A stretch of 64,000 nt of DNA, taken from assembly GCA_904063045.1 (NCBI GenBank), contig CAJFCJ010000020.1, forward strand, positions 1,604,916 through 1,668,915, in the 5' to 3' direction. The position numbers were made by a program, and so were the translations under genes. How positions within the stretch are numbered: the first letter of the stretch is position 1; every line of letters begins with the position of its first letter. The notes under the pieces were generated by a model. The model had not been told where the DNA came from and did not search any database. It saw only the letters and a list, made by a program, of their open reading frames with translations. Positions 11,901-16,654 of this stretch are shown here, in pieces. Origin of the DNA: Dimorphilus gyrociliatus. Its lineage: Eukaryota; Animalia; Annelida.

Positions 11901-12188
11901 GATAGCGTAATAGAAAAAGGAAAAAATAAATAAAGCACAAGAAGGCGCTAGTGAAAGAGCACCCTGAATAGCAGACGAACTTGGAACGATATCCAATGAA
12001 TTATTTTAAATACTTTTTCATCCATTGGATGAGACAAAAAAAGCAGTTCAGAAAATTCTTAGAAGCAGGATAAAGTAAAAGGCACGATGCATAAAGGCAC
12101 TATTTTTTTGAATGTTTTTTTCTTCTTATTTTTTTTTCCGTTTTTTTTTCTTTCTTTCATTTTTTTTTGTTCTTTTAAATAATGTTGA

Positions 12189-15100
12189 CTAAGTTTTAGC
12201 TTCTGCATTTTCTTCGACTTTGAGACGGCGATCATCCACTTTTGTATACAGATGAACAGCTTTAAAAAGAAAATGAGAGAGAGAATAAACTTTAATGAAA
12301 ACAACCTATAGGCTCGGTACGAATTTACCACTTACCTTCTGGGTGAATTATTCTCATATGAGTCAGCATGTTATCCCTCCGAGTATATGTTCCAGCGCAG
12401 AGAGGACATTGATGTCTGACTTTACCGTGGACAGTCGCTACATGACGTCTCATTTTAGCAGGCTCTGACAAAATCTGTTAGATGTTCATATACTATATTC
12501 CATATATAGAGAAATATTAATAATATTTTATATTGTTATTATATCAAATAAAGTTAATAAGTAATAAGAATCCACCATTCAATAGATTACCTATAAGCAT
12601 TTCTAGAAAATAAGTATAAAAGTATTACGGAATTTCCCAATCGAAATGGAATATAGGAAAATAAAAACAAGATCTCTTTCCTACTGCAAATTTTATATAT
12701 ATACATAATCTATGTTTATGTAGAAGAGTTTATACTAAAAAGACATGTTTATTTACTTTATGACAAATTGGGCATTCTCTCCTCCTATCCTTTACCCCGT
12801 CGCCTATCGGTCTACCGGAAAGCATCTCTTCTGTTATAACGTCTGGTTTTATTTTTATTTTTTTCTTATCCAAGTCTTCACTCATTTGAGAACCGTATAG
12901 AACTTCACTATTCGAATTTGTGGGGACAAGAGGCATTATTCCTTCAGGATTTGTTACCTATTTTAATGAAGAAAAACATATAATAACACAAATGCACTTT
13001 ATTATTATGTTTTTCATATAATTTTTAATCAATTAGATACTAGTGTATTAAGCCTACTCTACCCGTATAATTTTACTTAAAACAAAATATTCTAATAAAT
13101 CTTAACAACCGTTAGTCATAGCTAATAAAAGATCCTTGCTATCGTCCAATATAATAAATTTCTTCTACAACTCCCGTAATAATAACATATCATGCTTTTT
13201 TGTTATAAAAAACATTATATCCAATCCAAAGCAAGGAAAGTTAAATATGAAACGCAGGTAGTTTCGGGCTTTTGTTATATATAAATTGATATTTTAAACC
13301 TGATGGTATTAAAACTTATAGGTAAGAAAGAAAAGAAAATAATAGATATTATTCCAGTTTATGAATTTATACATGTATACATATATATTAGTATATATAT
13401 ATATATATATGCATATTACGCCGGTATTTATAATACATTTCTCTCATTCTATTTTTGCCTATTTTCCTTTTGCTTTTTTTCCCTCTCTTTCTTTTCTTTT
13501 CTTTATTACAATCCTTTTCGAAAAATAAGTAAAAAGTAAACAAAGGCAAAATAGATACATTATATATACAGTATATATAATATATAGTGTATTTGTATGT
13601 ATGTATGTATACATATATATATATATATATGTTGGTGAACATCTTGTATTTTTAGTACTTAAGAATTCGTACAAGATAAATCATTTGAGAAAAGACTAGT
13701 CTAATCAATTTAAAAAAATAATTCTCTCAACTTTGGTCGATAACAAGCCAAAAAGAAATAATATAAAAAAAAATATAAAAAAAACATAAAAGCAATATAC
13801 ACAGTATATATATATATATAACTTTATATATATACTATGTATTAGTATACATAAAGCTTTGGTGGTTACAAACCTGTTTATAAAAAGTATCTGTTCCATT
13901 CCTGAATTCCGAATTCGCGGTCTGTTTGTCAAAAGAGAAAGAAGAGAATTAGATAAAAAAAATAACATTAAAACATAAAAAATAAAAAAAAAACAACAGA
14001 TAAAAAATGTTTTTTTCTACTTAACAGAAAACCAATAGACAAAGAGAGACAGAGACAGAGAGAGAGAAGGGACAAAAAAGAAAAACAAGGAATACAAATA
14101 ATAATAATGCTTGTAATATAAATATTATTAAAAACAAATTGCTATAGTTTAAAAAATAGATATTTTCTTCATTCAGTTTTAATATAAAAGTCTTATAATA
14201 ATAAAAAATATACCAATACTTGAATAAATAAATATACTTTTAAATAATAAAAATTGGCTGGTTAATGGGATCAAGTGAGAATATATCAAAAGTGATTCCA
14301 ATTAATTAGGATTCATAAAGGCAACAGTGAATTATTCCTAATACAATATTTAATTAATTGCTTTAGGGGTGATGGTTTCTTTTTTATTATTATTATTTCG
14401 TTTTATTAATTGCGTGTATAAAATATAATAATACTCTCTCCCCTTTATTTTTCCTTTTAGTTGTTAAACTCTTACTATTATATAATACTAAAAGTAATAA
14501 TACAACTTTGAAGAGTATTTATAGGAGCGAAGTTGTAGGATATTTTTGAGTACATATTTAATTCTTATGATACTTTCTAATATTAGTAAGAAAGATGAAA
14601 CAAACCGATCCATAAGTATTTCCATCTCCATTCCTAGGCTCCACATCCGCAGCCTGTTCAAATACAGAAAAAAATAGTCAATTTTTAATCAAAAAGAATT
14701 GAAAAACCCGGCGCCATATCGAGTTGTAAAAATAACAGCTGTTGTGCCTGCGCCCTGCCACCTTTTTCAAAACATATGCTTCTATGCAAATTTTTCTTTA
14801 ACTAATCAATATATTTTTCTAAGCGAGATTCAACTTACATTTGTTTCCTTGTACAAAAACGGTAGCTCTCTATCGGGAAATACAGGAACGTTTAATAGAG
14901 TCTTTTCATTTTCTTTTTTTGTACATAAATTTAACGCTTCGGGTTCTTCCTTTGGTCTCTTTTGTATTAATTGAACGGGACTAGATTTCCTTTTCGCGCT
15001 ACCTCTTTTTTTTTCGGGTAGAACTTGGTCTAAGGCACGGAAAGATGAATTTACCACTCCTCCTGAATAGATATCCTCCTTTAAATTAATAAGAAAAACA

Positions 15101-15228
15101 TCCGTTTTGTCCAATGTGATTCCTAAAAGACCTTCAACACTAATGTGGGAACTTGGCAGATAATTTTGGCAAATCATTTTTACAGCCTCCTTTAAAAGGG
15201 TTTTGACTTGTTCCACTTCGGATTTCAT
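12189..15228 (-). CDS. C2H2 zinc-finger protein with two C-terminal fingers and a conserved-looking N-terminal domain
   Basis: Exons 15228-14839, [14653-14606], [13921-13874], 12957-12757, 12474-12336 and 12259-12189. Splicing assembles CPICHKILSEPAKMRRHVATVH and HQCPLCAGTYTRRDNMLTHMRIIH. The last exon is less certain, because read-through would stop at 12325. Confidence 0.85.
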
Positions 15229-15762
15229 CTGAAATAGATATAAATCTTTCAAAGTGTATACAATACGCATATTAGCCACGTAAATTTAGAACTGAAAAAT
15301 CTAGAGCAAGTCTGACACCATCTGCTGACGCCCTGTTACGAACCCTTCCACAAATGTTTATTCTAAATTTTCCAATATTATACAATGATTTAAGTAACTT
15401 TTATGATTATAACATACCTGAGTTAGTTAAGTACTACAGTCTACAATTTTCGAAACGAAAATCAACAGCGAAAAGCATTAATTTCGAGGTTTGTAGGCGA
15501 AAAGCTCGTGTGTTATGTGTTATATGGTACCGTCAGATGGCCAACTGGTTAAAGCTCCTTGTTCACAGGGATTAGTTAGAAATAGTCAGGAAGGGAGCCT
15601 GGCTACTCTGAAGGGAAATTTTGAAACGGTTGAAAAAAAATTATTTTTACCTGAGTTTTTACATAAAATTTCTTTTATTTTTAATAATTACGTAAAGCTA
15701 TTCTTTTCGCTGAAATTTCACACTCTCGGGTAACCTTCACCTTGCCCTTCACATCATAAACA

Positions 15763-15772
15763 AAGATGGCGG
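15763..15772 (+). promoter_or_regulatory. YY1-type motif AAGATGGCGG overlapping the NDUFB6 start codon
   Basis: Matches the YY1 consensus (A)AGATGGCGG, which commonly overlaps ATGs of housekeeping and OXPHOS genes. Motif match only. Confidence 0.5.
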
Positions 15773-16654
15773 ACGGTGGATCGAAACCGACGAATGAAGC
15801 TCTTTCTTGGCATGAATATGACCAGAAAGCAATCGAAAAGTATAATAAAACCTTAACAGAAAAGCTAACTCGTGAGAAGATATTAATTCGTCAATACTAC
15901 TGGCGTGGAAATCGAGTTGCTCCGTTTTCAATTGAACCAATGCCATATGAAAGACAACGTCTTTCGGAACTCATGTCAAGTGAGGATAGAGCACTCAGAA
16001 AGCAATGGGTATGTCTTACAAATCTTGATCGTAATATTTCCGACAAATTTATATTGAAATACATTCGTTGTAAATAAAGGTTCTTGATCAAAGACTAAGT
16101 CCTAATGAACCGGTCCATGTAGCTGAATTAAACCCTAGAAATCCGATCAGGAGAGCCTTGGCAACACCCTGGAACATGTTGTTTAAATCAATTAAACCTT
16201 TCTTGGTATGTAAATTAATTTTCTCCAATCTGTTTTTCAAAGTTCTGTTACGAAACTACAACTTATAATAATAATACTTATACTAATACTATTTTCTGTT
16301 TACATTTTTAAGGGTGACAAATGGGCAACAAAATTAAGAGGAGCTGTCCCAAAGGTAGCTTTAGGATGGGTGGTCGCCTGTGCTATGTATTACAATATAG
16401 CATATAATCCTAATCAATGGACTAATATTGATGGCTGGCACGTTTATGGAAATAAACCAACACAGATTTATGTAAGAGATTGCACAAATGTTTTAAAAGT
16501 TTCACTTTCTAAGTCTAATTCAAAACTTTTTGTTTAGGGTGAAGAGGGTTGGCTTCAAGGTTCTGAGAAAAAGGATAACGACTTTCATGATTGCGGCTTT
16601 CAAAAAAGAAAAGTGTTCTTGGGAGATTATGAAACTTCTTCGAAGCCCTATTAG
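15766..16654 (+). CDS. NDUFB6: NADH dehydrogenase (ubiquinone) 1 beta subcomplex subunit 6 (B17)
   Basis: Exons 15766-16008, 16080-16205, 16313-16471 and 16538-16654. Spliced protein: ...PFSIEPMPYERQRLSELMSSEDRALRKQW-VLDQRLSPNEPVHVAELNPRNPIRR...TM helix...DFHDCGFQKRKV. Confidence 0.9.

Follow-up and report, generated by a model that had tools for sequence, protein, structure and literature searches.

In this study, we believe (probability of about 0.8) that, in the annelid Dimorphilus gyrociliatus, a zinc-finger gene (DgyrCDS12650/12651) has two 48-nt exons, here called A and B, that are both spliced into the same mRNA and give a tandem repeat of 2 x 16 residues; the pair comes from a probable tandem duplication. 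Both stretches are genuine exons, as indicated by the public proteins, by a spliced transcript contig of a relative and by their conservation compared with the flanking introns, and they are coding exons 2 and 3 of six. The window, that is, the whole 64-kb stretch of DNA that was analysed, carries the following parts of the gene:

15418..15532, minus strand: 5' UTR exon, donor CAG/gtatgt; positions 1-115 of contig L001, from which the contig next jumps to 15228; 98% identical to the relative.
14839..15228, minus strand: coding exon 1, starting with ATG, residues 1-130, donor AAT/gtaagt; N-terminal domain (1-55) and the start of the linker.
14654..14838, minus strand: intron between exon 1 and exon A, 185 nt, near-invariant between lineages, with a GC-rich patch and the palindromic AACAGCTGTT.
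14606..14653, minus strand: exon A, 48 nt, phase 0-0, AADVEPRNGDGNTYGS, acceptor aacag, donor TCG/gtttgt, residues 131-146.
13922..14605, minus strand: intron between exon A and exon B, 684 nt, AT-rich, with one conserved block at 14251-14384.
13874..13921, minus strand: exon B, 48 nt, phase 0-0, TANSEFRNGTDTFYKQ, acceptor aacag, donor CAG/gtttgt, residues 147-162.
12958..13873, minus strand: intron between exon B and exon 2, 916 nt, with TA/TG microsatellites and conserved blocks at 13676-13766 and 13016-13350.
12757..12957, minus strand: exon 2, 67 codons, covering the last part of the linker and half of zinc finger 1 (its first half, up to CPICHK), residues 163-229.
12336..12474, minus strand: exon 3, 139 nt, remainder of finger 1 and finger 2, residues 230-275.
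12187..12259, minus strand: coding part of exon 4, C-terminal helix and stop TAG, residues 277-298.

Re-reading of the minus strand reproduced base for base the two exons of the original prediction, both 48 nt long, stop-free, in phase 0-0 and encoding the peptides that it had given. The flanks were also as described: A lies between ...tgaacag and gtttgt and B between ...caaacag and gtttgt, each after a pyrimidine tract ending in AACAG, and the two exons have in common codon 2 GCG, E5, codons 7-9 AGG AAT GGA and codon 14 TAT. The apparent 1.9-kb intron in which they had been placed does hold both of them, but it is actually three introns of 185, 684 and 916 nt. The G+C content of A is 50% and that of B is 37.5%, local peaks like those of the gene's other exons in an AT-rich interval (24.5%). 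The exons had been called hidden; however, both are in GenBank CAD5124361.1 and CAD5124362.1. They are indeed absent from the track of open reading frames, but merely because they are short, and both stand in the public gene models.

The gene was identified with queries that were each a single exon or a public protein. An exhaustive HMMER search with exon 1 as its sole query returned a 298-aa public protein with 100% identity across residues 1-130. This protein of D. gyrociliatus (GenBank CAD5124361.1, which is UniRef A0A7I8W883 and DgyrCDS12650) consists of exon 1, A, B and exons 2, 3 and 4 in this order, at residues 1-130, 131-146, 147-162, 163-229, 230-275 and 277-298, and the translation of every exon is an exact substring of it. 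A then B are present also in the second public isoform, CAD5124362.1 (DgyrCDS12651, 278 aa), which differs solely by the retention of the last intron (76 nt, 12260-12335, minus strand) and consequently ends in HPEGKW, without the C-terminal helix.

The joint splicing of A and B was also found in a relative. The Logan contig L001 (SRR31837527) is 1063 nt long, intron-free and unbranched across all junctions. It aligns to the window at 15532-15418, 15228-14839, 14653-14606, 13921-13874, 12957-12757, 12474-12336 and 12259 onwards, so that the junctions from exon 1 to A, from A to B and from B to exon 2 fall at exactly the predicted boundaries. Because L001 comes from a diverged lineage (92% exon identity; gene-wide dS 0.40 and dN/dS 0.04, with synonymous sites differing at 31%), it is independent evidence for these three junctions. 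A is thus directly followed by B in both public isoforms and in the spliced transcript contig of the relative. The original prediction had named dominant A-to-B junctions as the sign of constitutive tandem exons, and the joint form is what all assembled data contain.

The transcript evidence is qualitative, as it consists of two gene models and one assembled contig, that is, of assembled sequences rather than counts of junction reads, and minor isoforms may exist beside the A+B form. The annotation of D. gyrociliatus was built on PASA transcript assemblies with a weight of 10, and alternative variants were added by PASA (PMC7854359); an exon-skipping form present in the published transcriptome would therefore probably have been listed, had it been seen. 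A word search with residues 101-200 of CAD5124361.1 found no protein with A only or B only, the matches being its own cluster only, and no member of the five-member 90% protein cluster of CAD5124361.1 is without A or B. In kind, the A/B pair is ordinary, and it is already in the public annotation.

The comparison with relative lineages was made with L001 and the genomic contigs L002-L008 (Logan: SRR31837527, SRR23372216/28/29/31 and SRR31984831). Exon A agreed with the relative at 46 of 48 positions (96%), with its splice sites kept. Exon B agreed with two relative lineages at 42-43 of 48 positions (about 90%), with its gtttgt donor kept, and exon 2 was 91% identical. The A-B intron, 684 nt long in the window, has about 940 nt in the relative, and the identity between the two was 44% with gaps included, apart from a BLAST block at 14384-14251 (76%). 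The intron between B and exon 2 gave 50% with gaps included, with BLAST blocks at 13676-13766 (87%) and 13016-13350 (80%). This indicates that A and B are islands of conservation amid largely unalignable introns, with AG and gtttgt kept in the relatives. Nowhere in the gene is the divergence at non-synonymous sites higher than in exon B (pN 0.10), which fits a linker. The three conserved non-coding blocks on the minus strand (14251-14384, 13676-13766 and 13016-13350) may be intronic regulatory elements within otherwise unalignable long introns. The median intron of D. gyrociliatus is 66 nt.

The next question is whether A and B are copies of one exon. Aligned in register, they agree at 27 of 48 bases and 6 of 16 residues. 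When AG...GT, stop-free candidates of the same length and no more than 2 kb apart were scanned on both strands of the 64-kb window, A/B was the sole pair with an identity of at least 56% among 6230 same-length pairs. Under the strict criteria, fitted post hoc to A/B, a pair was found in 0 of 100 block shuffles. The test in one fixed register is fairer, since A and B are real adjacent exons with one natural register, and in this test 27 of 48 matches had a probability of 5e-6 under base shuffling and 1e-4 under codon shuffling. As a control, 444 in-frame 48-nt windows from the gene's other exons were compared, and none of them reached 27 matches (mean 13.2, maximum 23). The donor hexamer gtttgt is used by no other exon of the gene and is kept in all lineages for both A and B, and the 9-nt core AGGAATGGA, identical in A and B, is likewise conserved in all lineages. 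Length and phase are exactly equal. Judging from the sequences, we believe that a single 48-nt exon, its gtttgt donor included, was probably duplicated in tandem within the Dimorphilus lineage to give the pair.

A rather unlikely explanation, though one with some weight, is that A and B are constitutive exons but not paralogues, and that their likeness arose by chance or convergence in a low-complexity polar linker. Against this explanation stand the fixed-register probabilities, the control windows, the 9-nt core with the identical rare donor hexamer, and the equality of length and phase. In its favour, block shuffles gave 0.23 same-length pairs per strand at an identity of at least 56% when splice-site identity was ignored, and the A/B pair was not reported by a repeat finder. 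Moreover, the similarity between A and B is only 23-25 of 48 bases in the relatives, and the shared residues there fall to 4-5 of 16. The original prediction had read the shared features as the signature of a duplication. Of the shared residues, only E5 and R7-N8-G9 are common to A and B in every lineage; the AACAG acceptor, codon 2 GCG and codon 14 TAT are not kept in exon B of the relatives. The acceptor of exon B in the relative is TTTTGTAG (ttttgtag), so the AACAG shared by A and B in the window is not a conserved feature. The peptide of exon B in the relatives is TTNSEFRNGTDNFLKQ or TTNSEFRNGTDSFFKQ, so it is only in the window that B agrees with exon A at A2 and Y14. The tandem duplication that had been proposed is plausible from length, phase, donor and in-register similarity, a comparison that spans just 48 nt. 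A possible third copy of the repeat, where exon 2 begins (VTNPEG...), was dismissed, as it gave 15-17 of 48 matches by hand count, which is background when windows of the other exons reach up to 23 of 48.

The original prediction had also proposed that the linker motif be sought in orthologues. ExRNG was absent from the 178 other family proteins fetched and, within the sensitivity of the search, from all other parts of the genome, which suggests that the repeat is probably a duplication of the Dimorphilus lineage. The double ExRNG linker repeat is found in Dimorphilus only among the 181 fetched spiralian members of the zinc-finger family, and because none of the others has ExRNG, there is no single-copy outgroup. 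Outside Dimorphilus the searches yielded no orthologue, the nearest matches having 38-45% identity, in the N-terminal domain only.

We propose that one 48-nt exon with its gtttgt donor would have been duplicated in tandem in the Dimorphilus lineage; both copies are in the mRNA and give a repeat of 2 x 16 residues with an E-x-R-N-G core. The repeat lies in a long linker, predicted to be disordered, with the N-terminal helix/beta-hairpin domain on one side and the two C2H2 fingers on the other. Its role would be that of a spacer or of a doubled short linear motif, not of a folded unit. Constitutive tandem duplication of a symmetric phase 0-0 exon is a known situation, which A/B matches in length, phase, similarity, shared donor and the presence of both copies in the mRNA; unlike the typical case, A and B are very short (16 residues), strongly diverged and encode a disordered linker instead of a domain. 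Read in this way, A/B would be a clean case of a very short exon duplicated in tandem and constitutively kept, by which a disordered linker gained one 16-residue unit.

The structure predictions are consistent with this placement. In the AlphaFold2 model, based on a 66-sequence family alignment, residues 1-55 were confident (pLDDT about 90), with residues 2-23 forming a helix and residues 28-54 a beta-hairpin, and residues 220-296 formed two confident C2H2 fingers and a C-terminal helix, the exon 3 region having a pLDDT of about 90. Residues 60-210, including residues 131-162 of A+B, had a pLDDT of 44-58 and no secondary structure, and the linker around A and B is thus predicted to be disordered. 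The whole-protein model of the ESM Atlas was poor (pLDDT 0.49). Pfam found zf-C2H2 and zf-C2H2_4 on exon 3 and no family on exons 1 and 2, where the sole match, DUF4770, was below threshold (E 0.11).

The same architecture is found in spiralian C2H2 zinc-finger proteins with an unnamed N-terminal domain reading ...VEGLLGITLDxxDVFLINI...; common to them and the DgyrCDS12650 gene is a domain of ~55 residues at the N-terminus, then a long linker of low complexity, and 2-3 C2H2 fingers at the C-terminus. The N-terminal domain of the present gene (15064-15228, minus strand; ...SVEGLLGITLDKTDVFLINL...), a confidently predicted helix plus beta-hairpin of no Pfam family, occurs in hundreds of proteins of annelids, molluscs and other animals, in which a long acidic linker and then 2-3 C2H2 fingers typically come after it. 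In the genome of D. gyrociliatus, paralogues with this domain lie at C6:3491219, C14:1441243, C3:443287, C6:4421415, C5:1097023 and C20:624147, and some relatives have the domain twice. No name was obtained for the family: a search seeded with residues 1-60 of a distant member returned only unnamed ORF-type calls from other animals, the cluster look-up for eight full-length members gave no names, the feature search of the ESM Atlas gave no usable match, and the structure search returned unnamed spiralian zinc-finger clusters only.

The 185-nt intron between exon 1 and exon A was more conserved than any coding exon of the gene. Compared with the relative, it had 183 matches, 1 mismatch and 4 gap columns (two differences in homopolymer length), whereas exon 1 differs at 9.5% and synonymous sites at 31%. 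This is 1 substitution against about 57 expected at the synonymous rate, and the chance of at most 1 change in 184 sites is about 3e-28 at that rate and 8e-8 at a rate of 10%. The conservation starts at the donor of exon 1, the last 50 nt of which have 8 differences, and continues through exon A, where synonymous divergence is low (1 of 11.7 sites). The intron is single copy in the genome and holds GGTGGCAGGGCGCAGGCACAACAGCTG and GATATGGCGCCGGG. A scan of 12000-16000 gave no Rfam match in it, folding gave no stable structure (z of +1.55 for the sense and -1.19 for the antisense strand), and an exact-pattern scan of metagenome contigs with its GC-rich core had 0 matches. A CTCF site in the GC-rich patch was considered and dropped by eye, as the two half-sites did not fit the consensus. 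The Rfam matches to mir-297/mir-1277 at 13352-13641 were rejected as artefacts, because they are sub-threshold (25-30 bits against gathering scores of 81-90) and lie on low-complexity TA/TG microsatellites.

With 1 change in 184 sites against 31% at synonymous sites, the 185-nt intron may mark an unrecognised regulatory element, either an enhancer or an intron that regulates splicing. Conservation of the flanking introns is a known mark of regulated alternative exons. Regulation of exon A or of this intron has a modest probability, and the conservation of the intron lends no support to an exclusion between A and B. It is unlikely that, besides the default A+B form, A and/or B also serve as regulated cassettes or that the 185-nt intron is a regulated retained intron, the outcome of which would be a condition-dependent linker length or a 132-aa protein of the N-terminal domain only (...KETNVS stop). 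Besides the near-invariance of the intron and the low synonymous divergence of exon A, the weak gtttgt donors, the frame-neutral length of 48 nt and the fact that one intron-retention isoform of the gene is already annotated agree with such regulation. However, no skipping isoform was seen in the PASA-based annotation, the protein cluster or the word search, which have low power here; L001 is one unbranched contig over all junctions, and exon B is without conserved flanks. Still less likely is the narrower form in which exon A and the 185-nt intron are a regulated splicing unit, with A conditionally skipped or the intron retained so that translation stops after ...KETNVS. If true, a zinc-finger protein would be under post-transcriptional control through an element more conserved than its own coding sequence.

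The mutually exclusive use of A and B, exactly one per mRNA, which the original prediction had put forward as a candidate, is very improbable, as A is followed by B in all three transcripts or models and no one-exon protein was found in the searches above. Equal length, phase and donor, adjacency and similarity are the usual anatomy of mutually exclusive exon pairs, which are tandem, equal-length, similar exons in one gene, and in these features A and B are like them. Unlike such pairs, A and B are both in every transcript seen, they can be included together without a frameshift, a long intron separates them, and the search for competing RNA pairings gave none. With 684 nt between A and B, there is no steric block. 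Both acceptors are cag and both donors are gtttgt, without an ATATCC or GTATCC donor, and because both donors are of the GT type, no U2/U12 incompatibility arises. With A and B together, the reading frame of 298 aa is intact and stop-free, and 48+48 nt are frame-neutral, so nonsense-mediated decay (NMD) would spare double inclusion. The docking or selector sequences that had been suggested for the introns did not appear: the best intron-intron duplexes were matched by 73, 51 and 65 of 100 shuffles, a comparison from which short conserved pairings may escape, and the inverted repeats, including those of the 916-nt intron, are TA microsatellites. If true, mutually exclusive use would have meant a swappable linker in a transcription-factor-like protein; little changes, because A and B are ordinary exons, already annotated and used together.

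Two further observations were made around the gene and its relatives. The public runs contain at least two more Dimorphilus-like lineages, which diverge from the reference by about 8% in exons and 31% at synonymous sites, and exon B differs between them. These lineages look like cryptic species and would be useful for phylogenetic footprinting of the compact D. gyrociliatus genome. Upstream of the gene, the 5' UTR exon (15532-15418) is arranged head to head with an ORF on the plus strand that begins at 15766 and by eye looks like a small NADH dehydrogenase beta-subcomplex subunit. This layout suggests a shared bidirectional promoter of about 230 nt.
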